Source: Macrostomum hystrix
Taxonomy: Eukaryota; Animalia; Platyhelminthes
Reading direction: 5' to 3'
Length of the DNA stretch: 64,000 nt
Assembly: GCA_950097015.1 (NCBI GenBank)
Contig: CATNEN010000039.1
Span: forward strand, 5,828,001 to 5,892,000
Shown here: one piece after another, positions 28,182 through 51,268 of the stretch
How the letters are laid out: every line of letters starts with the position of its first letter
Numbering within the stretch: position 1 is the first letter of the stretch
Notes under the pieces: model-generated
The model's input: the letters and a program-made list of their open reading frames with translations, nothing else
Told to the model about the DNA's origin: nothing
The model's database searches: none
Translations under genes and position numbers: made by a program

Positions 28182-28218
<37 letters not shown>

Positions 28219-28945: not shown

Positions 28946-29706
28946 GGGTAGCAGGTGAGGAAGATAGCAGGTGAGGAGGGTAGCAGGTGAGGAGGCTAGC
29001 AGGTGAAGAGGGTAGCAGGTGGGGAGGGAAGCAGGTGAGGAGGGTAGCAGGTGAGGAGGGTAGCAGCTGAGGAGGGTTGCAGATGAGGAGGGTAGCAGGT
29101 GAGGAGGGTAGCAGGTGAGGAGGCTAGCAGGTGAAGAGGGTAGCAGGTGAGGAGGGAAGCAGGTGAGGAGGGTAGCAGGTGAAGAGGGTAGCAGGTGAGG
29201 AGGGAAGCAGGTGAGGAGGGTAGCAGGTGAAGAGGGTAGCAGGTGAGGAGGGAAGCAGGTGAGTAGGGTAGCAGGTGAGGAGGGTAGCAGGTGAGGAGGC
29301 TAGCAGGTGAGTAGGGTAGCAGGTGAGGAGGGAAGCAGGTGAGGAGGGTAGCAGGTGAAGAGGGTAGCAGGTGAGGAGGGAAGCAGGTGAGGAGGGTAGC
29401 AGATGAGTAGGGTAGCAGGTGAGTAGGGTAGCAGGTGAGTAGGGTAGCAGGTGAGGAGGGTAGCAGGTGAGGAGGGTAGCAGGTGAGGAGGGTAGCAGGT
29501 GAGGAGGGTAGCAGGTGAGGAGGGTAGCAGGTGTGGAGGGTAGCAGGTGAGGAGGGTAGCAGGTGAGGAGGGTAGCAGGTGAGGAGGGTAGCAGGTGAGG
29601 AGGGTAGCAGGTGAGGAGGGTAGTAGGTGAGGAGGGTAGCAGGTGAGGAGGGTAGCAGGTGAGGAGGGTAGCAGGTGAGGAGGGTAGCAGGTGAGGAGGG
29701 TAGCAG
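28946..29706. repeat. 16-bp purine-rich minisatellite (gagggtagcaggtgag)
   Basis: About 47 copies. Confidence 0.96.
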
Positions 29707-30913
29707 ATAAAAAAAATCATAAAAAAACCGTCAAATTACAGAAGTCAATAATTAGTTCTTTTCTTTAAGCAGCTATTATAAAACAATTTGCATCAAGAGA
29801 ATGTTGCAAATAGCAATTAATACTGAGTCTCGCTGATTGCTTTCCCCCTACAAAGCAGCAATGGGGAAAGTTGTCAGAACAATTTGTCGGAACAATGGAG
29901 AGTTAATGATCCGGGTGGATTGGACCTAAACAGCTTTGTGATTTGAGCTTCTACGGTTACTAAATACCCGTTCTATTTATGGCCGTTGTCATGGAGACTA
30001 GCTTGCAGCTGCGCTCAGCACTGTCTGTCCCTTGACGGGCTATTAAAAGCAGCCTTCTCACTCCAGTGTAGCCCGTAGGAGAGCAAAGAGTACAGTGACT
30101 GCAGAAAAGAATGGAAAATGGGTTAGTCATACCAGGGCATTCGGAGGGGGGTACTGCATAAAAATTCACTCCCGAAATGACGGGTTGGGTGTCGCTAAGG
30201 TTGTACTCTGTCCTCTACCCTCTGCTCCTCTCCGCGCTTTCTTTCTCAACAGGGTCTGAGAAGTGTTCCACCGTCCCTATCTCTCCAGTCTGCTGCAAGC
30301 CGCACACTGGCGAGATTGGTTGAGCACAAAGCTACTCAGCAAAGACAGACGCACGCGCGCTAGGTTTAAGGAATAAGCGAGAAGCGAGTGGAGCGAGCGA
30401 GCGAGTGGAGAAATCTCCAGCAGAAACGAGACACACGCGCACGGCCTCCTTGTTTCCAGCAGGTTGCTTCTAGGAGCCAGCTCCCTCCCCCCAAAGGAAA
30501 AAAGTAGCAGGCCTCACTAAAGCAGAAGACGCTAGCAGTAATTAGACTTAATAAGCCTTGGCTAATTAGACCCGCCCGACGTCAAGACATCTTTTCTGCG
30601 CCAGCTGCTGCCCTAATTTTCTGCAAGGTAAGCAAGGCTGGGCTTCCCCGTGCTTTCAATTTAGAGACACTGACATGTGCACACAGATGAGCACTGCTAG
30701 CTTAGATTCTCTGCTGACTTGAACACATTGTTTGTCGATGCCCAGTGCATCAATGCCGTGCAGCAATGGCATTATTGCACGGATAAGTCTTTAACTTTCA
30801 AACTTCGTTCACCAAAAAACCCCTTCTCTGTAGTGATGTTGAATGCCCGAATTCTTAGAAAAAGGGATGGACACCTGGTCGAATGCACAGCCCTGGAACG
30901 GCACTGAAAACTA

Positions 30914-32157
30914 CCATAGACAAAACGATAAAAAATAAAGAAAAACTTAAGGACGGCATGAATGCACGGACAGAAAAACAATTTAAATAAACCACTGCTT
31001 GGTCGTGTAGCCACGACCCATAGACACTCGTGCGCTACACTCCCAGCCGTGGTTTATTTAGTGCCTCATTGTATCGCATTTTTACACTCATTGCTTGTAT
31101 CCCTTTGGTGAGTAACAATGCATTGTTTGTAGGTACATTTTTAATTCGTTTTTATCGCGGTATGTTTTTTTAATATATTTTAAACAGCGAAGGAAGCAGA
31201 TTAGGTGACGAGCGTGTTTGAAACGTTTAACTCTTCCTAGATCAGTAGTCAGTCCACGACTCTTCAAGAACTCTAGAAAGTTGCGTCCATGTTCTTCCAT
31301 CTGCCTCAGCGAGCTCACAGGAAGATCGGCAATTTCAATAGCGAGTTCCTTTAGCTCATCTTGGAATCCAGGTGGCAGTGGAGTATCGTCATCCTTTTTA
31401 CCCAGGTTGTCCTCAATGAACAATGGATAGAAAATCTGACAATAATTCGTCCCTACGACAGTCGTTGGTAGATAATTCAGCGACGAGTTCAACTTCCGTG
31501 GACGTCAGTCCGTTTAGACTATCGACAGGAAGGTTTTCATGGTGTAGCAGCCCAATAGGCTTGCCAGCGTGATCCATCTTCTCTATGCTCGAAATGGTTT
31601 GTTAACAACTTCTCTCAGTTGCATGGCTAGCTGTCTAACTTTAATCAGATTCTATATTACCGGTAATATCACAGGTAATTTAGAATCTGCGACTTTAATA
31701 GCTCTCGTTTTACAGTACATGACAATGAATATCGTTTAAACCATAGAAAAAAGTGACCTCGTTCACACCCCACACCCCCTTGACCCCGTTTTGCGGGAAT
31801 TAGGTGGGATACTTTTATGTCTATGGTTGAAATGCGATACAATGGCGATAATCAGCGGTCCGGAGCTATCTATCATGCCATAGACAGTAAGGCAAAGGAG
31901 GGGTAAGCCATACCCCTTGACGGAATTGAGTGACGAGTGTCGAAAACGCAAACAAGCTGTCTGAAACGCTTGCTAAGTGTCAGAATTGACTGCGAGACTG
32001 TCGGAATCGGATGAAAACCTAGTAGGGACTGACCATAAACTGTCGGATTTGGATGCAACTTGAACAAAATATCCTACAGCTGTGCCAAAACTGAGCGAGA
32101 AAATGTGTAGAAGCCCTTGCTAAAGTCACTCAATAGTCCGTTTTGAGTGCCATAGAC
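30914..32157. mobile_element. Cluster A of CCATAGAC-type sites (putative site-specific recombination element)
   Basis: Cores at 30914, 31018, 31741 (ccatagaa), 31819 (reverse), 31878, 32032 (ccataaac) and 32150, several with inverted flanking arms. Confidence 0.55.
31088..31577 (-). CDS. Intronless orphan ORF (~160 aa) with one frameshift near 31430, lying between CCATAGA sites
   Basis: ATG at 31577 gives MDHAGKPIGLL...DELLSDFLSI, then a frame change into ORF 31088-31492 (EDNLGKKDDDTPLPPGFQDEL...GLTTDLGRVKRFKHARH...); AATAAA about 30 nt after the stop. Confidence 0.55.
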
Positions 32158-32438
32158 ATTCCGAGATTCAATACTAGCCAATGGCTTGTTTTAGCTACCA
32201 CAAAGCCAACAAGCGAAATAAAGCAAAAGTGCATGAATCGAAATATAGTACTATTTTATTGAATTTTTTATCAATTGATATATACGAGCTATGCTCATTC
32301 GTATTGTACATAAAAATCTTAATCTCCAAAAAATCAGGAGCAAAGACAGCAACGTCAGCAAGACAAGCGATAATCAGGTATTGACAAATATTTGAGCAAG
32401 GTCTTATCGGCAGTCAAAATCTATCAGGGCCAACCGCA

Positions 32439-33308
32439 ATGTCCAAGTACTGGGTCATCGAGCGAGGAGCACCTTACTCAACGGAGTACAAGCTGTACTT
32501 CTATGGTCCTAACGGCCCAATCTCGCCGTTTCACGACATCCCCTTGTTCGCCTGCGCCGAGAAACGCGAGCTCAACATGGTGGTGGAGATTCCACGCTGG
32601 ACCAACGCCAAAATGGAGATCAACAAGGAGCAGCGACTCAATCCCATTGTACAGGATGTGAAGAACGGCAAGCTGCGCTTCGTGGACAATGTGTTCCCGC
32701 ATCACGGCTACATCTGGAACTACGGCGCCCTGCCGCAGACCTGGGAGGATCCCAACCACACCGACGAGCGGACCCAGGCCAAGGGCGACAACGATCCGTT
32801 GGACGTCTGCGAGATCGGGCACCGAATTCACCCGCGCGGCTCCGTGGTGCGCGTCAAGCCACTCGGCATTCTGGCAATGATCGACGAAGGCGAGACTGAC
32901 TGGAAGCTCCTGGCGATAGACGTTACAGACCCACTAGCTGAACAGCTGAACGACGTTTCGGACATCGAGACGCACATGCCGGGCTTTCTGGACGCCACTA
33001 GAAGCTGGTTTCGCAACTACAAAGTACCGCAGGGCAAGCCGCGCAACGAGTTCGCCTTCAACGCTGAATTCCAGGGCCGCGACTTTGCTCTGAGCATTGT
33101 TGATGAGACGCACCGCAGCTGGCAGTCCCTGGTTGGTCACGTGATCGATCGGAATTCCATCTCGTGCGACAACGTCTCCGTGATCGGCAGCGCATATAAA
33201 ATCGACCAGTCAGAGGCCCGAGAGCTGGTGGAGAAGCAGCCCGCAGTGTTGCCTCCTTGCCCCATTCCGCCTGAGGTCAGCCGGTGGCACTACATCCCAG
33301 CAGAGTAG
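32439..33308 (+). CDS. PPA1: Family I soluble inorganic pyrophosphatase, intronless CDS
   Basis: ISPFHDIPL, MVVEIPRWTNAKMEI, NYGALPQTWEDP, GDNDPLDV and IDEGETDWK signature motifs. Confidence 0.97.
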   Translation: MSKYWVIERGAPYSTEYKLYFYGPNGPISPFHDIPLFACAEKRELNMVVEIPRWTNAKMEINKEQRLNPIVQDVKNGKLRFVDNVFPHHGYIWNYGALPQTWEDPNHTDERTQAKGDNDPLDVCEIGHRIHPRGSVVRVKPLGILAMIDEGETDWKLLAIDVTDPLAEQLNDVSDIETHMPGFLDATRSWFRNYKVPQGKPRNEFAFNAEFQGRDFALSIVDETHRSWQSLVGHVIDRNSISCDNVSVIGSAYKIDQSEARELVEKQPAVLPPCPIPPEVSRWHYIPAE

Positions 33309-34221
33309 ATTCGCAATTAGTCTACAGTTGTCAAGAGGCTGCTCTTTTGCGTAGCTGCTTTAGCCGATTCAATTGTTTTGTGCAAGGCTCGCTAAGTCGG
33401 TTCTGGAGTCGCATGAGGTATTCCACTAGCTATAGCAGTTATGCATCTCGAAGCACTCGTTTTTTTTCATTTTGTGATGCGTCTTAGCCATAAAAATCTA
33501 TATCAAAGGGACATTAGTAAGGGCCGTAAATTGAGAGTTGCTTGTGGGCGCTTGTATACCTCCAGGCCCAGCAGACAGACAAGAAATCTTAATACCACTT
33601 TTTATTTGGTAACCTAGCGTATAATACACAATCCATAATTTCCTTCTTTGAACTTTTTTCCTCAATAGCTACATTGAACTACTCCCATTGTTTCTTGATG
33701 ACACCAGAAAACTTCTGTCTGAACTTTTGAAAGTAGCGAATATTTTCCTCTGCTTTTATATATTTACCTCCACAATTGCTCTGGTGTTGTTACTTCATAG
33801 CAACTATTTAAATAGAGATATTCTGCGTGCTCTTCTAAACCCCTGTCCGTGTTTTGCTATGCTCAGCTTTCTGCTATGAAAGACAGCAAATTTTCCAAAT
33901 CTATTATGCAGTAATAAAAAAAATGTGTTTTCCCTAACATTCCATCAACACTCCGATTAAAATACTTGTAAAAATCTTATTAGTAATTTCTCTGTTTCCA
34001 TCTCTGGCGAAATAGTAGACTGATTCTTAATCTTGTTGATTCAGATCATCCAGCTAAGACTGTGGAAGTGGCGCCTCCTCCCCAGTCCATGGACTTAACA
34101 GCTCTCCACAGTCCATGAATCTGCGCTGTCTATGTAAGCACAGACCGACTAATAGAAAACGAATTACCTATTTAATTTATGAATCAAGCAGGGGAATGGT
34201 AATAAAAATGTATAGTAAGAA

Positions 34222-34515
34222 TTGATTACACCTGCCCCTATTGGGCCAGATGTGCAGCCGACAGCACAACCGCAGCTATTGCGCGGCGCATCTGAAGACT
34301 GCATACGGCTGTTCAGTCCATGGACTGGGGGGACGCCACACCCACCCTCAATTATCCCAGCTGATGCTGGTACCCATTTAACAACTAGGTGAACTGAAGC
34401 AATGCAGAGTTTTTGTCTTACTAAAGGACACAAATTTTTGTAGTTGAGTCGGGAATCGAACCCCCAACCTTTAAGTCGTGAGTCTGTGGGTCTAACCTCA
34501 AGGCCACAACCTCTT
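34222..34515 (-). mobile_element. SINE family B, full length
   Basis: tRNA head, CORE-like block, shared body and 3' gggcaggtgtaat. Confidence 0.85.
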
Positions 34516-34841
34516 AGGGGGGATTCTAGATTGCGATAGATACGAACTGCTTGAAAAATCTGTGATAAACTGAGGGAGGGGCCGCTGGTTTGTGTTGCAT
34601 TCGGCTTCATCCTGCTTGATCGGTTATAAAAACTGCGTGAGGGAGCTGAAAGGCTTCAGTTGGATCGAAAGCATGGTTTTGCAGCAGGGCAACTACGACG
34701 ACCCGCTCGGAGGTTGCCATCCGTAGTGCCCAGATGATGGACCAACCTGCAGCAGCGCCACCTTCCAGCACATCGGCCTGCAGTCGTACACGGAAATCCG
34801 TGTTCAAGCTGCTCTACTCATTTAAGTAGTAGGGAGGCTGG

Positions 34842-37176
34842 ACTAGACACTCAAAGTGTACCTCGACAATCGATGTGTACTTAGACACTCCAGGTGTACC
34901 TAGACACTCCTGGTGTACCTAGACACTCAAGGTGTACCTAGACACTCAAGGTGTACCTAGACACTCAAGGTGTACCTAGACACTCAAGGTGTACCTAGAC
35001 ACTGCACGTGTACCTAGACACTCCAGGTGAACCTAGACACTCCAGGTGTGCCTAGACACTCCAGGTGTACCTAGACACACAAGGTGTACCTAGACACTCC
35101 ACGTGTGCCTAGACACTCCATGTGCACCTAGACACTCCAGGTGTACCAAGACACTCCAGGTGTGCCTAGACACTCCATGTGTGCCTAGACACTGCACGTG
35201 TACCTAGACAATCATGGTGTACCTAGACACTCCAGGTGTACCTAGACACTCCAGGTGAACCTAGACACTCCAGGTGTGCCTAGACACTCCAGGTGTACCT
35301 AGACACTCCACGTGTGCCTAGACACTCCATGTGCACCTAGACACTCCACGTGTACCAAGACACTCCAGGTGTGCCTAGACACTCCAGGTGTGCCTAGACA
35401 CTGCACGTGTACCTAGACAATCCTGGTGTACCTAGACACTCAAGGTGTACCTAGACACTCAAGGTGTACCTAGACACTCCAGGTGTACAAAGACACTCCA
35501 GGTGTGCCTAGACACTCCAGGTGTTCCTAGACACTCCACGTGTACCCAGACACGCAAGGTGTACCTAGACACTCCAGGTGTACAAAGACACTCCAGGTGT
35601 ACCTAGACACTCCAGGTGTGCCCAGACACTCCAGGTGTGCCTAGACACTCCAGGTGTACCCAGACACTCCAGGTGTGCCTAGACACTTTTCCTAATTCGG
35701 ACTGGGCACCATTGCTGTCAGTGTTTGGACTAACTTGCAGAGTCGACTTGCAGATTCTAAAATTAATTCTCTCTATAAGGTTCCGATCCCAAGTACCCAG
35801 TTTCCAGGAGACAAAAGCCTCTGATGCATACAGAACTAGGCTTTCATTCATAGTTGTGCTAAACAGGATGAGCTGTTTGTGTTTTACTCTCTGAAATCCC
35901 GCCAACTTTCTCAGAAGCATTATTGGATATCCACTTTTTACCTAGTTCTATGGCATGAGTATCTATTGTTCCCTTCACGTTCATGTGAAACCCAAGATAT
36001 TTCCACTGCTGTACGGGTTCAACCAGTTGACCATGTAAAAACAGTCTATGTTGCCCTTGAGTGGAGATTGCAGCTTATAAGCTTTTTCTTCTCGGTGATT
36101 ATTTCTAATTTATGAGTATTGCAAAAATCTGCTACTTTGTCGAGGCCTTTTTGTAATTCTGTCAGGTCTTCACCAAAAATGACTAAATCGTCACAATAAA
36201 GCAGGTTGTTTACTTCTTCATTCAATTTGGAGGTATGGCTTTGAAATGAGTTTTTTAGGATTGTGCTTAGCGGGTCGATGTATAGGGAGAATAGCAGTGG
36301 AGATAGGGGGCATCCTTGCCTGACGCCATTAGTGATTCGACACGCCTCAGTAGCTGTGCTTTCTGACACCTTGAGGTGAAACTTCGCGCTTGAGTACATA
36401 CTCTCAATGGTACTTATTATTGCTGGGTTCACGCCCAACTGCTTTAATCGTGTGACCAGGGTTGGGTGGTGAACCATGTCAAAGGCGCTTTTTAAATCAA
36501 AGAAAACTAAATGGAAAGGCCTTTTCTTTTTCTTCTTTTTATGAATTAATGTCAATAGGGTTGCCATGTGATCGGAAGTCCGGCAAGCTTTTCTGTTTCC
36601 TATTTGACTAGCCGATAGCAAGTTCAGGGCTTTGATGTGTGCTTCTAATTTCTCGTAAATACACTCCACGTGTACCTAGACACTCTAGGTGTGCCTAGAC
36701 ACTCTAGGTGTGCCTAGACACTCCAGGTGTGCCTAGACAATCCACGTGTACCTAGACACTCAAGGTGTACCTAGACACTCCAGGTGTACCTAGACACTCC
36801 AGGTGTACCTAGACACTCCATGTGTACCTAGACACTCCATGTGTACCTAGACACTATATGTGTACCTAGACACTCCAGGTGTACCTAGACACTCCAGGTG
36901 TACCTAGACACTCCATGTGTACCTAGACACTATATGTGTACCTAGACACTCCACGTGTACCTAGACACTCTAGGTGTGCCTAGACACTCTAGGTGTGCCT
37001 AGACACTCTAGGTGTGCCTAGACACTCCAGGTGTGCCTAGACAATCCACGTGTACCTAGACACTCAAGGTGTTCCTAGACACTCCACGTGTACCTAGACA
37101 CTCAAGGTGTTCCTAGACACTCCACGTGTACCTAGACTCAAGGTGTACCTAGACACTCCATGTGTACCTAGACACT
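34842..37176. repeat. 20-bp minisatellite (ctagacactccaggtgtac) split by a LINE fragment
   Basis: Arrays at 34842-35687 and 36661-37176. Confidence 0.95.
35688..36660 (-). mobile_element. Non-LTR retrotransposon reverse transcriptase fragment (degenerate, truncated at both ends)
   Basis: VFFDLKSAFDMV, NGVRQGCPLSPLLFSLY and LLYCDDLVIF RT motifs; frameshifted continuation INFRICKSTLQVSPNTDSNGAQSELG. Confidence 0.92.
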
Positions 37177-38077
37177 TCTAGGTTTCTTTACGCTCGTAGC
37201 AGACACCACTCAAGGTAAAGCTAGCACTTTTGTTTTGTGTAAAATAAAATGTTTTTTTTAATGGAATATTTCACTTTGTTTGCAGCATTTTATTTCTGAA
37301 GCTTTTCTAAACGCTCGTTCTGAGCAGACAGTTGACAATAGCCAAAGCAATTAAGATTGAAAACTGTGCTCAGCAACATTTAATTTGACAATACTTCAGT
37401 CGGCACTCAGAGGCGCCCACTTCCCACCTGAGCTAAGAGATTCACTTAGTTGCCAAGCACAGGCCCACACTCCTAAGGCAGGGGCATATAGTTGAATTGA
37501 ATTAAAAGCCTCAATTAACTTACAATTATGTCTTCTTGCTTCGTTTCACTTTCATTCTTCACCAATAGAATGTAAATCTTTTCCTGAAGTGTTGCAATTC
37601 TTTCTTCTTTCAATTGTTGTGCCAAGCGTTTTCACTGCAGTAACAGCACAGCGGTTAAACCCAAAACCAGGTGGTCTGGCCAGCGTGAGCACTCTCACTA
37701 ATCAAAAGCCAATGAGGAAAGACATTTCTCAATTCATTCTCAGTGCCCGTGTGCGAGTCTATTCTTGTGGTTGTGAGAACATGCAGTGAGAACATGCGGC
37801 GCACCCAATAGTAACTAAAATACTAAGTTGCGCTGGTAAGGCACCGATTTATTTTCTTGCCCAATCTCTGTGCGATTGTCAGATGGAAACCGGTGGAGTA
37901 TAAGGAGGCCAGCAATAATCTCATCGATTATTAATAGCCAGACTAGAGTAAATTGCGCGGTCAGTCCACGCCTGGCTGCAGCCGACAGCACTTGTACGCT
38001 CAAATAGTAGAGTGAGACATTGACTCTCTGGTTTTATAGGTGATTACTCGTGAGCTTAGGGGCTTTGCAGAATACGA

Positions 38078-41000
38078 ATGCAGACTCGATCTGTCAGCCT
38101 TATCTTTAACAGCGGCAACACCAGCGTCAGCTGTGAGAGTCTCAGCGAGTTCGAAGATGAGAGCGTCTCGGGACGTCCGCCAACCATGACGGGCGCGGCA
38201 GCTGTCACAGCGCCACCGAATAGGCGACAGCAGCAGCGCTCTTTGCCTATGCATCAGAGGAACAACTTGAAGATGCGGCAGCAGCGCACTCAGTCGGACG
38301 CATCGCTTGTCTCGCTGCCGCGTATCATTTCGCATGAGGCAGCAGCAGCCAACGCCGCCGCCGCCGGTCCGACAGCAACACCGTCGCGTGGCGAAGCATC
38401 TGTACGTCGCCTGCTTCACCTACCGGCTGTAGCTCGCGTCTACCAGGAGTTCAAAGCCACGTTCGAGTACAAGCAGCTGTTCGGCCAGGCACCTCGAGTT
38501 TACATACCGTTTGTGGAGGCTGCGGTGTTTGAACCGCGCTACCTGACACCTGTCGAGAAGCGGGGCCAGCAGTATATCTTTCCGGGATGGTGCTACGGCT
38601 GCCGCCTTTGCCTCGGCTGCTTGCACCTCACGCGACCTCAGTAAGTAATTCCCTTCTTTTCTTTGTTTGCTGCACTGTTGAAAAAGCTTGTGTAGATTAA
38701 TAAGTTCAAAAGGACATCTAAAGACACAAATCGACTACCCTGAATCGCTGGCAGTCTTCACCAGGACAAGGCGGCTTCGCGTCGTCTACAGGCTGACAAG
38801 CAGCTGGCCAGCCGCGAGCTGACAGCCTCGATGGAGCTACTGCTTAATGGTGGGCGTCGGGCAACCTTGTCAAGCGAGACAGACGAAAATAGTTGAGTTT
38901 TGATTTTATCACAAAAGCATAAAAACAATTCAATAAAATATTGGTATATTCTCCTTTCTCTAAACTCACCTCATCCATTAAACGATTGCTCTCATTTTGG
39001 CAGTAATTTCGCTGCCTGACTGGGTGGTCAAGGAGATAGAGGATTACTACACGGAGACGGGCATAACACGAAAAACGACGCCAACGGATGTCGATCTGAA
39101 GAAGGCGCGCGTCAGTGTGGATCAAGATCGGCCTAAAGACTTCTACATCGGAATGCTTCAACACCAGCTTGGCGGGTGCAGCAGTCCGCGGACACTCGGT
39201 GGAAGCGACCGCGGAGTCGAATCTCCCGCTGACGAGCAGTCGGTCGGGCTCAATGGAGACATCAGCAGTGAGGACGAAGTTTTGAACGACCTGGAGGGCG
39301 ATGGCCGCGTAATCAAGGTCACCGTTAGCCGGCACAGGACAAATGACAAGAAGGAGGCAGAAGGAAGCGGTGCAGACGATGACGCAGAAGAGACAGACGG
39401 TGAGAGAAGGGGCAGAAAGGGACTGGACTTTGTGACAAGGATGTGATGGCTCTGTCAGCCTACTATTTAACAACCTGCATGTGCATGAAGTTTTTCTCTG
39501 AATCCAAAAGCTCACAAAGTCGTTCACAAAAGCGAAGCTGTCTAAACAATAGTCAATCCAGCTACAACTCTTCGATTCTTTTCATAATTGACTCTCGATC
39601 AGCGTCAAGCGAGCAGGACGATCCGGCGGTCCGAATCTACGACAGACAGCGGCGGCGTCGCAGTCGTCGCCGCCACCGCAGGGCGTGCGCTCGCGCAAGC
39701 ACGCGCCTGTCAACGGTTCCATCGTTGGCGGACTTGGAGGAAGACCGACAGAGTAGCAGCGAGGAGGATGTCAGCGAGACAGACGATGACAATTCAGAGG
39801 CTGGAGCTGGCGGCAAAGTTCGGTTCAAAATTCGCAGGCGCAATTTCGTCCTTTACAAAGGTTTTACAACTAAACATCTAAAAACTTACTTTAAAATCAA
39901 CCAGAAGCATTAAATGTGTCAATGAAATTATGACTTCAGTAGTCATGCGCGCTTCAAATTATAACCAAAACTTTTGCTAGACCAAAGCGAGGTAGATAAC
40001 TCTCGCTTGACGAAGTCTTCCCAGCATCGTCTGTTGCCATTTCCATGGCCGAGGCGATTCGCCAGTCTGAGCGGGGATTTAGCGGTCTGGTGGCCGCAGC
40101 TGCAGGTTGACAACCTTTCTGGTAACCTATGCATAGGCTGTCTATGCAAACTTGCTTTCTTTAGAGAAACCATTTCTTCGAGTATAGTTTATACTTACCC
40201 GTCCCCAGTAGAGATAGCACAAGCGCTTTGAAATATCTCCAGTAGATTTTTGTTGTTCCCTATAATTTGAGACTAGAGCGCTTACAAGGTTTGTTTACCA
40301 ATATTTTGTTTACCTATTTGTGTCGTATCTTTTATCTCCACGTCACAGCTCACCATTCGTCCCATCGGAAACATTCTTACATAATGTTGTTTTCGTTCGA
40401 AAATTATCTGACGTTCATTCCATGTATCTCGTAGTGTAGTTTTTTGGAAGTTAAAAACGAGAGAGAAAAGATTGCTACAGTTAAACCACATTGTCAATAT
40501 GGTGAAGTTAAAAAATTAGATTTACCTTGCACATAATAAAATCAAAGCAAAATAGTGCTTTTAACTTTGCAATTAACATGTTTATTGGAATCAGTACCAC
40601 ATCTAAATAAACTTTTTTCAGAGCCACACTTCTTCAGGCCGCGTCACAAGAAGAAGCTCACCATTCCACGAGATCCGTTTTCTAAGAACCGGCAATTTAA
40701 AATGGTGCGCCAGTCGATGATCACGCCTATTTCGTCCGGTAGAAAGCTCGATTTTATCACTACATCGAGGGAGACGAAAAGAAAGGTTTGATTGCTTTAT
40801 TTAATTGCCTACTAGATTGTATTTTCGTCGTTGCATGTTTAAGAGTTAGTACAAAACTTAGTACAAACGTAGGGCCTAGGGCTTAAGCCCTCAAGGGCTT
40901 AAATTGCACGACAAGCCGCTATATCCCCAATCGAATGTGGCTTCAACGAAGAACCAAGAATACCGACCATCGTGGGAGAGGAATGCGCACTAACCGCTTT

Positions 41001-44000
41001 GCCACTCACACACCCAAAATAAACTTCATTAATTGGAAACCTTCAACGAAAATCTTTAGAAATCCCGTAAAGTACTTTAAAAATAAAATGTATGCAATCC
41101 TTTGTACCTCACAAAACAGGAGCTGAAGCAGTTCAAGCTGAAGCCGAGAAACTCCGAGGAGAACCGCGGGGACTGGACGCCTCCGAAGCGAACTCCGTTT
41201 TCTATGAAAGTCTCAGCCCATCGAGGAAATGCGTAAGAAAATTTTTTTATAATCAAGTGTGCTTTTATCTTAATACATTCTTATCGAAACATTTTAGGAC
41301 TCAAGAAAAATTGCAGTCGAAAGTTTCTGCTCCAGGTGAGCATATTGTGCTTTCAGCCGAAAATTATCTCTTTTTTTCAGAAACAGCAGCATAATTTACA
41401 AATATCTTCGCTACGCAAGGCATTTGACAGGATTCATTAATTTAGTTTTCTGCATTCTTTAACTTTCAGAGCCGCAGCTACCTGTAATTGAAGGTGAGAT
41501 TGGCAGCGTCGTCTTCGATGAGCTATCAGCTAACAACCAACGCGCTAACATTGATGCTAACCAAACTAACAGCAAAGCTAACCATGCAAAGCAGATTCAG
41601 CGTCTAGCAGAGGAAGACGGACCTATGGAATCTTCCAAATCGTCTCAAAATTATGAGAAGAGTCGTGCCGCTTATTCTATAGTCACCCAGAGTAAGAAAC
41701 CGACAACTGGAACAAGCACAACACAGACTAAAGCCGCGAAGATAGATTTAGACAAAAGTCTTAACGCGAGGCAACTTGAAATGCAGACGACAATGCAGCA
41801 AAAGCAGCAGCAGCGGGAGCTTCAGAGCCAGTCGATGCCTAATTTTGGCTTGGGAGAAAGAAGTCTTCTTGGACCTCAACATAACGCAGGAATATCCTTA
41901 ACGCCGGACATTCGCTCGGTGCAGCATTCTCAGAACAAATCAAATTCGCGACTCAGCAGGAGTGTCACGTCATTAGCTGAATTCTACAACGTCACGAGAA
42001 GTACAGCGATAGTCGGAAAAGTTTCAGCGCTACTGTCGCTCGGAGCCGGGCCTTCAAGTGTTGGCCCCTCTAGTTCAGTCAGAAAGGCGGCCGTTGGCGG
42101 TGCAGTTGGTTTTGTTGCGAAATGGGCGGATTGGGAGTTTCAACAGTCACAACTGCAGGCTACAAGAATTGGTATGCCACTAATCACACTAATGATTTTA
42201 TCCACACACTGCGTACCCTTCACAGAGCAGGCGCCTCTCGCACTAAGGTACTTGAGCACGATTTCGCAACGGGCCAAGTTCATCTGGGGCGCAGCCGCGG
42301 AGAGAAGGCTTGGTGGCTTGTCGTACAATTTATGCCTCATGAGGCCCAACCCCCAAATAAATTCAGATTTACACACCTGTGTGAGTTTCTACCTGTGTAC
42401 AATATCTGTGTGGTTATTGTGCCTAAAATAAGCGTAATGGGTAGAATTTCCTCTCAAATTGTCTGGTTATGGCTAATTGGGAACATCAAAGCCTTAGAAC
42501 AGCAGGGTTTTGAGTCATTTTGTACTTTTTTCGTGAAACGTATTCTTGCTAAATGGGGTTAAAAAGCGAGCCTTGTGAAATACTCGTAAGCAACAGAAGG
42601 GTGGGACTGGGACAGCAATAGATGGAGTCCTCAAGTACACGGGTAAGCCAATTCCGCCACAATGGTTTTACAACCGACCAGACCGGGTCCGATTTGAATT
42701 TCTTGCCCGCTTTCTCGAGTTTAAGAAAATATTTTTCTCTGCTTACGATTATATACGAAAGCTGCATTCATATCTAAATATTTTTACCCGCTTTTGGCAA
42801 GCAGAAAAATGCTTGCTCACAAAGCAAGTCGAATGGTTCACGTTTCAAGCTTACTACTACTGATAATAACTGGCAAAACTTTTTCTAAAACAAAAACTAT
42901 CACGATAGTTGATTACACTTAACTCACTTCGCTGATAAAAATAATGAAGCAATAGCTCCAGCAGCAAGACGGAAGCAGCAGAATCGTCAGGCACAAGGTA
43001 ACTCAAATTGATCGAATCATAACTGCAGTTGTCTCCGTGCTTTGCGTCATTGCTTCTGTGGTTGGTGTGTCGAACATAGAAAACCCAATGAGTTTTGCTG
43101 TCTCAAAGTACCTACCAATGTACCTGTGTCTAGTGGTCTTTCTTGCTTAGAGACCTTCTCAAATCGAGCATATGTTTTTGGAAATATTTTTTCCGAAGAT
43201 ATCTTTATATCCAATTTATTTCTTTTATTTTTTGGTTTAAGTTATATAGGCCTTTTTAAACTTTAATTTTCAGTTATTCGTGACACTACTTATATAAACG
43301 AATATAAACTCAATAGCCTCTGATCGTAAAAAAAATTTTCCGCTCAAACTTTTTTGGCCGACACTTGACCTTAGTCTGGACTAATTTTTTTTAAACACTT
43401 TTACTTGATTAGATTGCTTTACTTCTCATCAGAAGTCGATAAGTTGCATTGTTCGTTATTCGGAAATTTATTCGCGCTTCGCATCAATTGTCTAGAGGCA
43501 CAAGAAGAGCATATTCATCAGCCAGCGTCTGTGGTCAAGCTCCAAAAGACTCGGCGTCGCATTCATCCGCCGATGCCGACGCCACCTCCGCCAGTGACAG
43601 CCGATGATCTTCTGCCTGAATCGATGCGACAAACAAGAGAGAGGCAGAAGCGAGAGAAGCCCGCGAGAGAAGGCGTCGCTGCCGTCAAGCTGTGGGGCCA
43701 GCGGATGGAGTCCTCTGAAGAGGAGGTCGACGACGAGTCGCCGTCGCCGACGCCACCGCCGCCGACGCCACCGCCAAAGACACCCTCTATGACTCCACCA
43801 CCACTGCCACCACCGCCTCCACTGCCAACAACCGCGGCTCCGCCACCACCGAGGCTGCTGAAGGTAGTGCCAAAGTAATGCAGCAGTTTTTATTTTACTT
43901 GATAGAACAGGATAATAATAAGCTGTAATAAATACAATAATGCAATAATAACAATGAGTCTTTGTACTTAAGCTTAAGATACAACGACAAATACTTTTTT

Positions 44001-44281
44001 CGCGTCAATCCGTTTTAGTCGGAAACAAAGAGCTTTGTGGGCGGCTCGCCAATAGCTCTGGATTTGCCACGCAGTCCGGAGACCGCCGTCTCCAGAATGC
44101 AGCGACAGAAGCCGCGAAGGAGGCCCAGGTGCAGCGCTCGGCATTTTTTATGATAGTTTTTATTACTTTTAGCTAGCTTTTACCTCAATACAAGTAGATC
44201 TTGTTCAAAAGCAGCGGGGTCTTGTTTTAGCTTCCTCTATTTTTATTTGAATAATTCAGCGATGACAATAGTCTGTTCTGA
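38078..44281 (+). CDS. Uncharacterised multi-exon, largely low-complexity protein; approximate exons 38078-38640, 38755-38849, 39004-39399, 39603-39860, 40622-40738, 41120-41232, ~41470-42140, ~43497-43863, 44019-44128, 44260-44281
   Basis: GC-rich coding-like blocks; the first six exons and the last three join in phase; the middle junctions are unresolved; no family recognised. Confidence 0.55.
40880..41012 (-). mobile_element. SINE family A, degenerate fragment
   Basis: aaattgcacgacaagcc, gaatgtggc and gccactcac match family A. Confidence 0.5.
42222..42475 (+). mobile_element. SINE family A, degenerate
   Basis: ggggcgcagccgcggagagaaggcttggtggcttgtcgt and cagatttacacacctgtgtgag. Confidence 0.75.
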
Positions 44282-44870
44282 CAGGTGAGAGAATAGGCAC
44301 AACAAGAAGTCGCGACAGACTAAGCATTTTTCATATGCCGTACAGCTTTTCCTCTCAGTAGAAGACGTTTAGTTAGTTTCTGGCAAAGTCAGTTCCATCA
44401 AGCTAAAACCTGGGCCAGTGTTTCAGGGATAGAAATTTTAGTCTCAAACTGTAGTGTAACCAAGTAAGAGAAAGAGTGACCGTCGCAATTTTCCATCAAA
44501 TCAATTGATGCACGCGGCCTAACGAGGCTCTGCGCCCCCTCAGCGCCACTATTGGCGGGCCTCATTTTCTTGCAGCGAGAAGGGAAAAAAAGAATGCTTT
44601 CCGCATTGATCGACAGGGAAGCCTCGCTTAACTCACGAGGCTGGGCGCTAGACTTGACTAGGGACAAGAAGTGTCTCTGAAGGGGCTCCAGGTAACTCAC
44701 TCCCACTTCCTTGTTTATTGGCTCCACGTTTGGCTGAGCGTCAATGCACAAGAGAAAACTGAAGCTCTCATACTAGTTGAGGCTGCTGTTTAAAACAGCG
44801 TTTTTAGCAGAAGTAAGCTTTACATAGTTCGCAGTTGCCCCCCGTCCTTGCAATTATTGGCTTCGCTGCC

Positions 44871-47598
44871 ATGTCCACACTAAAGTCCAAATGGCGCGCT
44901 GGCGCTATGGTTTCCAGACTGCAGCCATCACCGAAAAAGCCACCGACAACAGTTCCAAAGCCGCAACCTAAAGAAGAGCCAGCAATCAGCCGACCGAAGG
45001 ACAGTCTTGACTATCTAGCGAAATATTGCATCGTACACGCACATAGAATTCCTGCCTACGAAACAGCGTTCAAGCGAGCCGTTGTTAAGCAGCGCTTTCG
45101 CTACGACCCGTATAGAGAGATTGTTCGCGAAGCTGCAGAGGCAGCTGGTGGTGGTGGCAGCGGCGGGATGGTATGGTGGCCACCACAGGAATCGACACAG
45201 CCGGCTGCCGAAATGGCTCCTGTTGAAGCAGAATCACGCGAGATGTCATCTTTAATAGCAGATGGACGTGAACACGATGATTCTAGAGAGGCCGGCAGCG
45301 CGAGCGGGACTAGGGCTGCTTCCGCTAGCCGCCTGTCCACCGAGGAGATCTACCGGCTCCAGCTCCGACGCCAGGTTGGCACAATGCAAGCTGGTGATCG
45401 GCTGCTCGAGGCAATGCGGCAGAGGCTGGAGGCTTCATTGCCTCCGACTGTGCCAGTGAGTTGAGAAACTACTATTGATTTTTAGGTTCAGTAAACTTTT
45501 GGTTCAGAACAGCATCCTAACGAGGCTCTTTCAGGCTGCTAATCCAACGGACTGCGAGTTGGCCAAACTGAAATTCATTTTGGACTCGTTAACAGAACGA
45601 CTGGCGAAAACTAACGAGGAAATCCGGAAAATAAATGGTAGATGTTTGAGCTTCAATATAAATGTAACATAGAGTTAAGGGGGTTAGGGAATATTTTTTT
45701 AATTTATTATAAACACAATTCTTTCAGATACCGAAATACAGATAGTGGCTGGCATGGCCAGAGAAAAGTTTTGGGACTGCATTCCACTGCCGGATGATGA
45801 GCCGCAACCAGCGAAGCTTCAAGCCGGCGCTGAAGATCCTCCAAAGTTAAGACGGCGCCAGCAGCGAAGGCCGGGCGGTAAGATGGACCGCGAAGAGGCT
45901 ATTCGAATTAAGCGGCTAGTGGCCGGACTGCCCAGTGAGACGGTGGTGCAGATGCTGACGCCAAAGCAACTTGGAGAGGTATAATGGTGCATGTGTTATA
46001 TACTTTCTTGCTAATTTAAATTCTAAAACAGACATTAGGAATGGCTTACTGAGGCTAAAATGTCTATGGAACCCCGAAGTGGGGGCTCTGCCCCACACCC
46101 CCCGTCTCTGACTCTGAAAGTATAGCTTGGGCAAAAACGTCTATGGTACAATAAAATTGATACCCAAGCTTTGCGGGCGTCATTGAAAAATCCTCGGGCG
46201 CTCTGGCTATTAACTGCCCGCAAGAAAATTACCGAGCATTAAAAAGCGCTTCATAACGAGCCCCATACCTTTTTCGCCATGAATTGGCTCGTTTCCGGTC
46301 CTGAGTTATTAAGTTGTCCTTGGTCGGTATATATTCTTATATTAATTCATCTATGGACATTAACGGGCAAGACTTTATGCCCGCCGGGCAAAAAGGTCAT
46401 GGTACAATAGATCATCTCATCTTGGCACTTTATTATTTTAAAACATACAATTAATCCTGAATTTTGTTGAGTGAAATATTGTTTGGTTTGTTGACTTTAT
46501 ATAGTCTTGCTACTGTCTGTCACTATTTTTTTTCGTATTTTCAATATGGAACTTCCAGTATTCCACCTCTTTACATATATTGTAATGTAAATGTTGGACA
46601 GCAAAATGTCTCTCTTTGCAGCTGAAGGCCGCCAAATCACTTCGGCAGCTGACTTCGCAGTTGCATCGATGCCAGCATCGGGCGGAACAGCTGGCTGGCC
46701 GCATCGCCGAGACCAAGGAGGAGATTCGCCGGCTGACACTTTTCGGCAACACCGTCTTTGTTGAGGAGCAGCTGGAGCCGAGTCGGAAGCAGGCCGGAAG
46801 CGCGGCCTTCGTTCGCGAACAGTCACTGTTGTACCAGAAGCTCCACCCCGCAATCGACCTTGAGTTAAACATCGACCTAGTTGAAGAAGCTCTGCAGGAT
46901 ATTAATGGCCATCTAATCACCAAGCAGGAGATGCAGTATGTTTATCACATACTGAAGCTACCGGCCAGGACTCGAGTCAACTTCCGACTGTTCAGCGTGA
47001 TTGCCGCGCTCAGCGAAAAGGTTGTGCAGCTTGAGTGAGTTCACTACGTTTCTCAAGTACACTTACGAGCTAGCTCGTATTGAGAGTAGCTACTCGTATT
47101 TGAAGGTGGTGAAGATACGTCAGACACCAGTTTATGACCCTGTTAAGAAACCTCTTACCAAAATGTGTTACTATTTAGACCGATCATTCGCAAGATGGTG
47201 AACAAAATGAACTTCGACGCTCTAGACTACAAGCTGGAGAAGTGCAAGGAAATGTTCTTCCTGCTAGACGACCTCGATGACAAGGCTCCAACAGGATCTA
47301 TCACAGTTGATAGTCTGGCAATCGAACTGTTGGCGGGGAACCTCAAGGATGAGCACGTTGGATCGGTGAGCGCCATTGTTGCTGTGCTTAGAGAATTCTT
47401 AGAGAATGTTTTAGAGAGCCATGAATACTGAAGTAATTATTTGCTACTCTTCTGTTCTCGCATCAGGTAATAAAAAAATTCAACCGTGAGAAAAAAGGAT
47501 ACATCGACTTCCTGGACTACCTGACCTACGTGCCATTGTTCCTGGAAATTCACGAGCGAATTGTAGCTAATCCGCTCAATTCAGAGGCCGCCTGGTGA
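44871..47598 (+). CDS. Coiled-coil protein with C-terminal EF-hand-like motifs; exons 44871-45455, 45535-45637, 45728-45978, 46622-47034, 47179-47365, 47467-47598
   Basis: All junctions phase-consistent; EF-hand-like segments FFLLDDLDDKAPTGSITVDSL and KFNREKKGYIDFLDYL. Confidence 0.8.
46062..46402. mobile_element. Cluster B of co-oriented TCTATGG sites, intronic
   Basis: gtctatgg at 46062 and 46139, atctatgg at 46349, gtcatgg at 46396; sites 2 and 4 share the context gggcaaaaa.gtc(t)atggtacaata. Confidence 0.5.
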
Positions 47599-48123
47599 CG
47601 CGGCATCGATAGAGGAGTCGAGTGCTTTTGGCTTGCTCTTGACGACTTTTTTTGGTTATATTGTTTTGTGTTGCTACTGAAGTTCAAATCTGTCTTGTTT
47701 CGGGCAGTGGTACATATTACGCCATCAAGTTTAGTACGAAAAGGCGATGTTCTAAAGTTATATTTGAAAAATATCATTTTAAGCATAAAAACTAAGCTTA
47801 TTAGGCGGAGAATCGTGGACAGATCAGATATGGTACGAGCTATGTTATCCTCATGCTATTACTACCAACTAGAACCAAAAAGCGAATATAAAGTGCTCCA
47901 GAATTATTTATTTAATACTAAATAAAAAAACTCTATGGTGAATAAGAGAACTATTTTCCGCAAAAAAGTTTAAACGTAAATTTGTTTTGAATGTCAAATT
48001 TATTTAAATATGTTTAACTAATTAATTAAGACTTAAGTCTGGAGAACTCTGTCTATTAAATTTGATTAGATTTGTTGGTAGTTGAACCGTAATGAAATAT
48101 CGAAAGCTTATAGGCTTACAGAA

Positions 48124-48486
48124 GGGGGTCGGTGGCAGAGCGGTAATCGCGTTTGCCTCTCGCACCAAGGTCCCTAAGATCGATTCCACATTTATTTGGG
48201 GCGCAGCCACGGAGAGAAGGCTTAAGGGCTTGTCGTGCAATCTACGCCCTTATGGGCCAACCTCCAAGGCACAGTTCGAGTGTACACTGCCTGACGATGA
48301 GAAAGTCAGGGCAGATGTACACACGTGTGTGAGCGTATTCCTGCGTACAGTATCTGTGTGCTTGTGTGGTCAGGAGTCAGCAAAATGGGCAGAATTGCCT
48401 CCTCGCTGGCTGCGGGTCTAGTGTCACTAAATTATGTGCCACTGCCCACAGCCCTCCTGCAATTATTACTATTATTATTATTATTA
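48124..48486 (+). mobile_element. SINE family A, full-length reference copy
   Basis: A box TGGCAGAGCGG, degenerate B box, internal hairpin, 3' stem ggctgcggg/cccacagcc and (TTA)n tail. Confidence 0.9.
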
Positions 48487-49616
48487 GGCTTACAGAAAAA
48501 TGTTCTTTTGACTGGAGTTAGTTCGAAGCTTACAAGCGCTAGTAGCAGATGCCCTCATAGACCGAGTTTCTCAGAGGTCCGCCGCATCGTTGGGAAGCTG
48601 CTTCAGCGATGAAATCCTTGATGCAATCGGTGACATTAGCGGGCCCATCCAACTGCGTTCCGAAGTTGCAAAACCGGCCAACGGAGCGGACTCGACTGCA
48701 ATTCTCCAGTGTCAGGCCTTGATTAGGGACGGCACAAAAACGCCGGATCAGTTACTAAATCACTGAATGGACCAAGAGGTTTGACTCCCTAAAAGCAGTC
48801 ATGTCTCGATTGGTATTTGTGTCGTTCATGAAGCAGCCAAGATAATGATAGACGATGGCGGCAGAAGCTGAGGCCTAATGCATAGTCACGACTGCGATTC
48901 ACATATTGAATCATTTGACAATGCAGTCTACAAGGTTGACCAGCTCAATGCGAGAAAACATCTTTAAACATTTTTTGATAGTTTGAAAAACTGAAAAAAG
49001 GAGCAAAATACTCATGTTGGGATTTTTAAGTCAAGAAAATGTGGACTTCTCTAGCTTGTATCTGGGCTCGATAGCTCTGCCCCGAGTATACAACGCTGAG
49101 GCCATAGATTAACCGGCATGTGAAATCAATTGCGGATCCCCTGTGAGAGGGGATCTGCTGGCATCCGCCTGTCATTCATTCACTTGTAATGTCTATGGTC
49201 AAAACTGGGTGGACCAGGGAAGAGAGAAGAAGTCCCGCCTACTCTATCAGGCTTGAAAAGCATGGCTTCGTTTTATTTCTATTATCTAATCCAGTCCTGG
49301 GGCCAATTTTATAAAGCCTTGATCATAGATAAAAATCTATGGAACCGTTGATTTTATCATGTGCCACTTTTATAAAGAAGTGATAAAAATCTGACCACTG
49401 CGGGCATCCTGCCACAGACATATCGCGCTGTTGCAGAGATAGGATAAATTGATTTTATAAAACTTGTATCGGCCCACCATTGATGAAAAACTAGCGATAA
49501 AATCATAAGATTTTTAATTCTGCTTGTGACTAGGATAAGTCTTCATAATCATCATGGATTTTATTCAACTTTGGAATGTCGAGGACGAGGCGTGCTCCTC
49601 GAGTTTTCATTCCTCG

Positions 49617-49953
49617 CTAATTTTTCGACGGCGATTCCTTGCCTATTATCTGCAGCGCGATTTCATCTACCTCGTTCAGCTGAGCATCCTTCCCTCCCTC
49701 CGCGCCTGTCATTTTGCTGTTATCTTTCTTCTTAAGGGTCGCGCTTCTTATATTTTTCCGCGAGGCGTCGCGCAAGTGTTGAGGACGAATGTCCTCTTTG
49801 AAGCCATTCGCCTTTAGGACATCTAGAATTTTCTGCCAGGCTTCGTTCCTTTTTCTTGAACCGTCGGCGAAGTTGGCGAAGCTTCCAAAGATGATCTCCT
49901 TACGGGGAAGAATCTCCCGTAGCAGGAGTAGCTTTTTGCTCTTTAGAGAACAT
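49617..49953 (-). pseudogene. Frameshifted Myb/SANT-like (Harbinger ORF2-type) DNA-binding protein
   Basis: With about 3 frameshift corrections it reads MFSKEQK-LLLLREILPRKEIIFG...KNEAWQKILDVL...HLRD...NIRSATLKKKDNSKMTG; a Harbinger-like end ggggccaattttataaag lies at 49299. Confidence 0.65.
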
Positions 49954-50439
49954 CTTGCTTAGAATAATGTAAGATCGTGTTATAGCGACAAATTTAGAGT
50001 GAAAGAGCTGTAGAGCGGAGCTGGTATGGAAGAACTTCCAAATTTGGGACTAAATCAAAGATTATAAATACCCAAGATACGTCACTCAATGCAAAAATCT
50101 GGTTTTCGCTCTCATCACACACTTTATGCCATAGACATTGATAGCGCTATGCACCATTTCATGAATGAATGCTGCTATTTTTTATTGCCGGAATACTCAT
50201 ACGTGGTACATTGCAGAAATTGATGAATTTAACTTCATAAATTTAAGTGAATTTATATCAAATTACGCATGTGCATAGGTTGTTGCTGGCGCTAGAACTA
50301 TTTCACCTGGCAGTTTTATAAATTTTATATTTTATATTTTATAATAATTTAATATTTACACGCATATAAAAATACGCGTAGAACACGAAAAACATGGTGG
50401 GAAAGAAAGTAGAGGACAGAGATGAGCAGTTCGACTTAA

Positions 50440-50930
50440 CAAATTACAGTGCTATAGCATAACAGCTGTGCGTAGTAGGTCATGTAATCACGCAACTCCG
50501 AGATGATCTTCGAGCACACGCTCTCCTGCCTAAACAGCAGTTGCTTATGCCTTCTGATAGTCGCTTCTGACGGCAGACCCAAGTCTTCGGAGGCTCTTAG
50601 GTGGCGGTACGCTCAATTCAGATCTTGTCCATCTAAGTCCTTTCTGCTTCGTTTTACATCGCATAGAGCTCGTACGGGCTATTGAATGGAGCCTTCTGCA
50701 CTTGGTCTGTAGGTCTTTGATAGTCTTGCGCTAACGATCTCGCAGCGCATAGCAGGCAGTGCCTTCAAGTCGCTAGTGCCTGAGGTAGGTTCAACCGGTG
50801 AAGGTCGCATGTCAGACCTTAATGCTTCTGCAAAGCTCTGCAGCACTGGTGGGTATAGAATAGATTGTCAGCAATGTTATCTGGCAGAGGTTCAGGATCA
50901 GGGGAGACTGGTCGTAGCAGAGGAGATGCT
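50440..50930 (-). pseudogene. Decayed orphan ORF apparently homologous to 31088-31577
   Basis: Manual translation: EPLPDNIADNL...LQKH*GLTCDLHRL(fs)NYLRH*R...LRDR*RKTIKD vs TPLPPGFQDEL...LKSRGLTTDLGRVKRFKHAR...LKYIKKTYRD. Confidence 0.45.
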
Positions 50931-51268
50931 CCTTATTTCGAGGAGATTATATGATATAATATCCTAGTTTTGTCAAATAATCTCACCAAAAATTACCATA
51001 GACAACACATTCCCGGCTCAGAATAGTACAATTTATTAACGATTAAATAAGCAATCGTATTTTATATAGTCCTAGTTAGAAACATAAAAATGACTTTGAA
51101 AGTGGCTATCGTGATCCCTATAGCATGACATTACTGTCTATGGCCTCGGGATGCTGCGCGCCCCAGCCAAGACTAGAATAGAATAGAAAAGACGTCTAGA
51201 ATTTTCTGCCAGGCTTTTCTGCCAACAGCTAACAGCTAAAGTACTCGAATTAATCCAGTGGCCTGATC

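Follow-up and report, generated by a model that had tools for sequence, protein, structure and literature searches.

An octamer shared by unrelated transposon families in a 64-kb stretch of the Macrostomum hystrix genome, and its link to a Crypton-type element

The octamer and the repeats at its three clusters

The stretch of DNA analysed here (the window, 64,000 nucleotides) is C39:5,828,001-5,892,000 of the flatworm Macrostomum hystrix, whose assembly comprises 220 Mb in 42 contigs; labels of the form Cnn denote contigs of this genome, labels of the form Lnnn the genomic copies or loci that were compared, and unlabelled positions are those of the window. The open reading frames (ORFs) of the window encode domains of four kinds only, namely inorganic pyrophosphatase, ankyrin/SOCS, a reverse-transcriptase fragment and a Myb/SANT-like domain. 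In addition, the window contains the octamer CCATAGAC/GTCTATGG, hereafter the word, which the original prediction took as the core of a recombination site in an integron- or shufflon-like array of cassettes with cargo genes, mobilised in trans by a Crypton-like recombinase. A recount gave exactly the 11 exact copies that had been reported, a number not reached in any of 100 dinucleotide shuffles (mean 1.45, maximum 5). All of them fall into three clusters, A, B and C, at 30.9-32.2, 46.06-46.15 and 49.2-51.15 kb (Table 1), and the reported spacings also hold (31018 to 31878, 860 bp; 50129 to 50996, 867 bp; 50996 to 51143, 148 bp).

Cluster A lies within the pyrophosphatase gene. The evidence for the intron comes from contigs of two public runs, X1 and X5; a contig of X5 (1,831 nt) is composed of 30410-30625 and 32336-33950 with 0 differences, and ends there like an mRNA. 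Since the contigs skip 30626-32335, all five words of cluster A are located in the first intron, and the gene simply tolerates an intron of 1.7 kb that is filled with transposons. The cluster is a mosaic of three unrelated repeat families, R1, R2 and R3. At least 13 copies of R1 are present in the genome (76-90% identity), and longer ones (L014, L018, L020 and L021) carry 475-677 bp between the arms which are missing from the window copy. At the left end of R1, a decayed word, GTCGATGC, is found at 30734-30741, and it is intact in L019 and L020. The R1 hairpin is kept together with its word in L009 and L012, and with a one-mismatch word in L016 and L018.

R2 is bounded by perfect inverted repeats, and its copy L002 (97%), 72 kb upstream, begins exactly at 31067. 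Its exact word (31819-31826, minus strand) lies 3 bp inside the right repeat, about 18 bp from the element end. The older copies L003 and L006 have CCATAGAC where the window copy has the near-word CCATAGAA (31741-31748), and L006 also retains the GTCTATGG partner at the position of 31819. The 86-bp segment between inverted words that had been described in cluster A is thus present, but one of the two partners is this one-mismatch CCATAGAA. The frameshifted ORF of R2, which had been regarded as cargo, belongs to no Pfam family and has no homologue in 1.84 billion representative proteins. A 46-bp palindromic element nested in R2 is missing from L003. R3 has about 11-14 genomic copies and shows no inverted repeat; in the full unit the word lies about 75-80 bp from the 5' end, and the homology stops sharply at 32108-32112 in all copies.

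Cluster B is probably intronic, judging from the plus-strand open frames on its two sides (45703-45980, ending at GT, and 46586-47035). It contains B1, a young family (at least 40 copies, 93-97% identity), whose two words lie 29 and 55 bp from the B1 ends; the second (46139) is in the loop of a hairpin formed by AGCTTGGG (46124) and CCCAAGCT (46163). Judged by coordinates only, the start of eight B1 copies is 2 bp past the first word, and that of four partial copies coincides with the second. B1 and its companion segments have the same orientation in the window and in one copy at 82% (C11:3159160-3159402); B1 is inverted relative to the companions in about 21 other copies, with a spacer of 26-30 bp. 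The difference in orientation could reflect either an inversion or an independent insertion.

Cluster C is intergenic. Its largest component, C-a/C-b, has about 10 genomic copies, and in the full ones (on C19, C31, C38, C1 and C14) the far end is 50054-50137 in inverted form at 98-100%. The window remnant is without about 830 bp of the interior and without the right end; its word (50129-50136) lies within the left repeat, about 75 bp from the end. Only frames of up to 62 aa are found in the remnant, a Pfam search of them gave no match, and the second ORF-bearing cassette postulated here therefore contains no intact ORF. As read from alignment coordinates, the C-a copy at C14:1993968-1995929 has a 577-bp insertion exactly at the subterminal word, flanked by a 10-bp duplicate, TGCCATAGAC. 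The neighbouring C-c occurs in 37 copies with an exact 18-nt anchor, at 93-99% identity. The patch at 49102-49419 is probably an old decayed element end; a genome search with 48950-50050 yielded no other match. The Myb/SANT-like frame in this region has a domain score barely above the Pfam threshold, and its start looks frameshifted. A 26-nt piece of this frame is repeated (96% identical) at 51191-51216, 48 bp from the word at 51136.

Clusters A and C had been described as sharing one layout. The geometry is indeed common to both, but their DNA shares just 12-17 nt at the words. They are not homologous: they consist of different repeat families, and the ORF of cluster A has no match in cluster C (best tblastn E = 0.53), which leaves the idea of a decayed homologue of this ORF in cluster C unsupported. 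The supposed cargo is a frameshifted ORF in one cluster and decayed remnants in the other.

Table 1. Positions of the words, genes and repeats (window coordinates unless a contig or locus label is given)
Feature	Position	Strand	Remarks
Exact words (11)	30914, 31018, 31819(-), 31878, 32150, 46062(-), 46139(-), 49191(-), 50129, 50996, 51136(-)		
Exon 1 (5' UTR), inorganic pyrophosphatase gene	30410-30625	+	Transcript-like contigs (X5, X1) join 30625 to 32336; donor AAG/GTAAGC
Intron 1, 1,710 bp	30626-32335	+	GT..AG; whole of cluster A inside; same joint in X1 and X5
Exon 2, inorganic pyrophosphatase	32336-33950	+	CDS 32439-33308; Pfam Pyrophosphatase, E = 9.6e-52
R1, internally deleted copy	30727-31079	+	Left arm 30727-30891 joined to 30886-31079; exact words 30914, 31018
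R1 long imperfect hairpin	30984-31060	+	Inverted repeat 19 nt at 89%; exact word 31018-31025 in loop
R2	31067-31844	unstranded	Perfect 15-bp inverted repeats CATTGTATCGCATTT (100%) at both bounds
R2-borne "orphan ORF" copy, frameshifted	31088-31492	-	4-nt indel relative to L003 splits frame
Nested 46-bp palindromic miniature element	31646-31691	unstranded	8-bp target duplication ACTTTAAT (31638-31645, 31692-31699); no word
R3, 5'-truncated copy of ~305-bp non-autonomous Crypton derivative	31862-32108	+	Exact word 31878-31885; copies L004, L007, L008, L010
Exact word, no detectable paralogue	32150-32157	+	40 bp past R3 3' end; 32113-32250 without genomic match
B1	46033-46201	unstranded	Exact words 46062-46069 (-), 46139-46146 (-)
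B companion segments	46204-46409	unstranded	46204-46242 and 46341-46409; contiguous in L006 and ~20 genomic copies
Nested 98-bp miniature element	46243-46340	unstranded	Splits B companions; junction duplicate ATTAA (5 bp); no word
Single-copy patch	49102-49419	unstranded	Exact word 49191-49198 (-); one-mismatch words 49102, 49335, 49412; perfect 8-bp-stem hairpin 49135-49155
Single-copy open frame, Myb/SANT-like DNA-binding domain	49620-49958	-	Pfam Myb_DNA-bind_5, 22.4 bits (cut-off 21.7), E = 1.2e-4
C-a/C-b, remnant of 2.27-kb element	50054-50925	unstranded	84-bp terminal inverted repeats; left repeat 50054-50137
C-c, 143-bp young miniature element	50926-51068	unstranded	Exact word 50996-51003 at centre, between two small hairpins
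Exact word, no detectable paralogue	51136-51143	-	68 bp past C-c 3' end
Example minisatellite arrays	13276-16178, 9230-10244, 28945-29706, 34843-35687, 36661-37176, 56364-57539		
CCCCAGTCCATGGACTGAACAGC miniature element and GGAATCGAACCC tRNA-like repeat	16659, 23205, 34085-34330; also 11663, 16545, 18702, 34452		
Minisatellites with one word per unit	C1: 515395-516042, 750456-751087, 1762462-1762679, 2124088-2124415, 2171138-2171268, 4861719-4862167; L011:877-1296		

Genome-wide abundance, element boundaries and the Crypton link

In the whole genome CCATAGAC occurs 21,428 times, and the reversed control word 6,012 times. The excess noted in the original prediction holds in the window over the shuffles, and the genome has an excess over the reversed control; however, the chance baseline used there was misleading, as the genome mean is 6.2 words per 64 kb and the window is therefore only about 1.8 times the average. 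The 200 kb upstream of the window contain 10 further words, again grouped by twos and threes, and 64 kb surrounding copies of R1-R3 contain 62 words, 10 times the genome mean. At least eight of the 11 words fall within dispersed repeats of six unrelated families, in most cases 18-80 bp from the end of the element, so that the assignment of the word to mobile DNA is borne out; two further words (32150 and 51136) lie 40 and 68 bp outside an element end.

A logo over 78 distinct sites shows [T/G][A/G]-CCATAGAC-A-[A/T] conserved, with one or two positions per side and unrelated flanks beyond them. The recurring flanks that had been pointed out are mostly this extended consensus, but 30914 and 50996 do share more, and are the only pair of words with a longer common flank (25 nt at 84%). 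Other 8-mers of the window are equally enriched, and all of them come from tandem arrays or from a tRNA-like repeat and have long flanks in common; CCATAGAC is set apart from them because its flanks are unrelated. Many unrelated minisatellites with units of 16, 21, 41, 49, 52 and 80 bp hold exactly one CCATAGAC per unit. Direct word pairs 25-150 bp apart number 7,365 in the genome, compared with 1,450 for the reversed control; since the control also reaches 1,450 and the genome is rich in minisatellites, no special link of the word to tandem arrays is read from this. An Rfam search and a tRNA scan (28-54 kb or the whole window) gave no match. A literature search for the octamer returned primer sequences only, and one for Cryptons together with Macrostomum returned no paper linking both in substance.

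The relation of the words to the ends of repeats was assessed by an all-against-all comparison of 330 kb of sequence. Alignment ends are enriched at 11-80 bp from words (160, compared with about 112 expected) and weakly enriched at 1-3 bp (13, compared with 6.5 +/- 2.4). None of the bounds of R1, R2, R3, B1, C-a/C-b and C-c given in Table 1 coincides with a word. Whether homology breaks exactly at the cores had been named as a check; instead, it runs through the words in the families whose sequences were compared. The geometry of a core between inverted arms had also been invoked. No such arms were found beside the word (complementary pairs in 11-bp arms average at most 3.25, compared with 2.75 in random windows), and the logo adds to it one conserved base per side. 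Hairpins with a stem score of at least 9 occur within 90 bp of 15% of words and of 6.7% of random windows. "Hairpin plus word" was considered as a universal architecture and rejected, as it concerns a minority of words and the mean folding energy is no different.

The domain DUF3504 of Pfam, which we take to be the Crypton recombinase domain, has at least 147 matches in the genome, many of them inside open frames of about 500 aa. Among the scored candidates none is in the window, in agreement with the earlier statement that no recombinase is encoded there. One match on C38 (9934458-9934772, minus strand) sits between copies of the two ends of R3, within 1.7 kb: C38:9933646-9933753 corresponds to the 5' part of R3 at 94%, and C38:9935316-9935364 to its 3' terminus at 90%. 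The 18-mer TCATGCCATAGACAGTAA, which holds the word, is found at C38:9933682 and is identical to that of the R3 copy in the window; the C38 element thus has the word in the same subterminal place as R3. R3 is therefore a deletion derivative of a recombinase-bearing element of about 1.7 kb. The postulated recombinase acting in trans has in this way gained a link to at least one piece of the clusters. Among 121 copies of the window families, eight lie within 10 kb of a recombinase domain, compared with 1.2% expected. A Pfam search of the ten largest ORFs around copies of R1, R2 and R3 gave, apart from noise, a tubulin gene but no recombinase.

Other features of the window

Minisatellites fill the window from 4450 to 63190. 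At least 17 arrays, whose units are unrelated and 10-68 bp long, amount to about 10 kb of the 64 kb; one array of a 22-bp unit has 132 copies. The window also contains copies of a miniature element whose inverted ends read CCCCAGTCCATGGACTGAACAGC, as well as a tRNA-like repeat with GGAATCGAACCC, a B-box-like word; ARAGORN called no tRNA in the window. The reverse-transcriptase fragment (36046-36669, minus strand; RVT_1 E = 1.1e-29) has one and the same 19-bp tandem array on both sides (34843-35687 and 36661-37176), and the ankyrin-repeat and SOCS-box domains belong to an intronless open frame at 27445-28254 (plus strand), which is indicative of an animal genome. The segments 42233-42336 and 48155-48248 are 78-83% similar and lie inside plus-strand ORFs (41625-42431 and 48092-48421) without a Pfam family, which may be a local orphan gene pair. 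Outside the window, comparison with the paralogous copy in L019 shows that L015 has gained an element of 1,136 bp (L015:1859-2994). Its inverted ends read CAGGGACAACTA and its target duplication, of 9 bp, reads ATCCGCTCC, so that it resembles a common DDE-type insertion into this transposon-rich DNA.

Competing explanations and the meaning of the word

The explanation that we regard as probable, though by no means assured, is that the clusters are three patches of unrelated, mostly non-autonomous transposon debris which share one word, and that this word is a putative docking site. In cluster A the families R1, R2 and R3 have landed in or beside one another, as have B1 and its companions in cluster B, and C-a/C-b and C-c in cluster C. 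The word, of about 10 bp in the form R-CCATAGAC-A, typically lies inside the elements at 18-80 bp from one end, in many cases within or next to a hairpin peculiar to the family. It is a subterminal signal common to Crypton-type and other elements, and may serve as the docking site for a Crypton-type recombinase or for a partner DNA-binding protein. Elements that keep the word, autonomous and non-autonomous alike, could then be moved in trans. If the same protein also recognised the word in the target, new copies would land near existing words and clusters would build up. Docking in both element and target would explain the retention of the word by non-autonomous families as well as the pile-up near words. 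The positions of some elements are consistent with the latter: a same-strand word follows the 3' end of R3 at 22-112 bp in four of about 11 copies, with unrelated flanks (32150 in the window included), and a word lies within 150 bp of the 3' end of C-c in six of 37 copies (51136 included). The 577-bp insertion at the word in the C14 copy of C-a, as read from alignment coordinates, points the same way.

Several observations weigh against this docking-site explanation. The excess of words outside element ends is modest, the numbers are small, and a high density of words is in any case typical of transposon-rich DNA. For three of the 11 words (32150, 49191 and 51136), the DNA around them has no detectable paralogue. 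Among R1, R2, R3, B1, C-a and C-c, only R3 is tied to a recombinase-bearing element, and for 93% of the family copies no recombinase domain was detected within 10 kb. No DUF3504 match was among the scored candidates in the contiguous 264 kb of C39:5,628,001-5,892,000, and no recombinase was seen beside 12 R1 copies. Furthermore, R2 and C-a have terminal inverted repeats (15 and 84 bp), and published animal Cryptons have neither terminal inverted repeats nor target-site duplications nor a shared motif (Kojima and Jurka 2011; PMC3212892). Some carriers of the word may therefore belong to other superfamilies, in which case a host factor would be more plausible than a common recombinase.

In the main rival explanation, a host transcription or chromatin factor, such as one active in germline or stem cells, binds to the word, and many transposon families have acquired this site independently as an aid to expression. 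The clusters would in that case be patches of transposons, with a word unrelated to recombination. The terminal inverted repeats of R2 and C-a keep this explanation live, and it could also account for a word found in families with very different ends (15- and 84-bp inverted repeats, hairpin ends, a Crypton derivative), for its lack of dyad symmetry, as expected for a monomeric DNA-binding domain, for the location of two R2 words 5' of the R2 ORF, and for the three words in DNA without paralogues. However, the word has no consistent position relative to genes, which argues against a promoter role. The C38 Crypton has it 3' of the recombinase gene, C-a has it in both terminal repeats, and C-c and B1 have it without carrying any gene; generally, the words follow element ends and not coding starts. 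A host regulatory or insulator motif was initially favoured as the likelier explanation and was lowered after the repeat analysis and the recombinase search; we now consider a host factor unlikely, although to be taken seriously.

Alternatively, the word could be the strand-exchange core itself, with integration from core to core, words marking the junctions, and modules swapped or inverted between words. Most CryptonS, known from oomycetes and diatoms, have TATGG as terminal direct repeats (PMC3212892), and GTCTATGG includes this pentamer. The C14 copy of C-a with its duplicated TGCCATAGAC, the B1 copies that start 2 bp after the first word or at the second, the small excess of alignment ends at 1-3 bp, and the flipped orientation of B1 in the window compared with about 21 other copies would all suit such a core. 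It is nevertheless very unlikely, as the families for which sequence is available have bounds 18-80 bp from the word with homology running through it, the word is without inverted arms, and the nested insertions use an 8-bp target duplication or ATTAA and carry no word. Moreover, all words and near-words of cluster B point one way and therefore cannot explain an inversion.

It had also been considered that the pieces might be ordinary DDE-type miniature elements with target-site duplications. The nested element at 31646-31691 fits this description with its 8-bp duplication, but it lacks the word. The element at 46243-46340 has a 5-bp junction duplicate, ATTAA, and likewise no word. The word-bearing R2 and C-a have inverted repeats.

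A functional integron- or shufflon-like cassette array with cargo genes is almost certainly wrong and already contradicted by the tests made. Its only support is geometric: in both A and C, 860-867 bp separate two direct words, and inverted words enclose short segments. Each "cassette", however, is put together from repeats of unrelated families, clusters A and C lack homology, the ORFs have no homologues and are broken by frameshifts or decay, cluster A is removed by splicing as part of an intron, and among the scored candidates no recombinase lies nearby. The likeness to integron attC and shufflon sfx sites is superficial, consisting in short repeated sites between segments. In contrast to these systems, there is no adjacent integrase, the element boundaries lie 18-80 bp off the sites, functional cargo ORFs are lacking, and the segments are dispersed repeats. 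No cassette or cargo system is at work here.

Other known systems resemble the docking-site explanation in part. The elements hAT, CACTA, P and Harbinger have subterminal repeats that bind the transposase, are found in either orientation no more than about 100 bp from the ends, and are kept by non-autonomous derivatives. Those words are family-specific, whereas here one word spans many families and the suspected enzyme is a tyrosine recombinase. In bacteria, unrelated elements known as IMEX carry a dif-like site, exploit the host XerCD and integrate at existing sites; their recombinase is host-encoded and their crossover site has dyad arms, a geometry that is absent here. Among Cryptons, non-autonomous families outnumber autonomous ones, and CryptonI-1N1_RPro, CryptonA-1N1_OL and CryptonA-1N2_OL are examples (Kojima and Jurka 2011; PMC3212892). 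Like these, R3 keeps just the two ends of a tyrosine-recombinase element, that of C38. Unlike published animal Cryptons, a word of about 10 bp is found across otherwise unrelated families, some of which have terminal inverted repeats. The resemblance to CryptonS lies in TATGG and in the tie of both motifs to Crypton ends; however, the CryptonS pentamer is the terminus and is read as a recombination substrate, whereas the word is found 18-80 bp to either side of the ends, and readable junctions show no duplicate of it.

A bolder possibility, which we consider distinctly unlikely, is that an active Crypton-type recombination system uses R-CCATAGAC-A as its common recognition word, with more than 20,000 partner sites in the genome, and that its elements are mobilised in trans, land side by side and occasionally recombine from word to word. 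If true, this would explain the insertion exactly at the word on C14, the B1 subfamilies that begin at a word, and the flipped B1 segment. Neither a terminal repeat nor a recognition site has been published for animal Cryptons (PMC3212892), and the word would then be the first defined cis-acting site for them. Apart from this bolder possibility, the word, being common to a recombinase-bearing element, its deletion derivative and several young families, is a concrete candidate for such a site.

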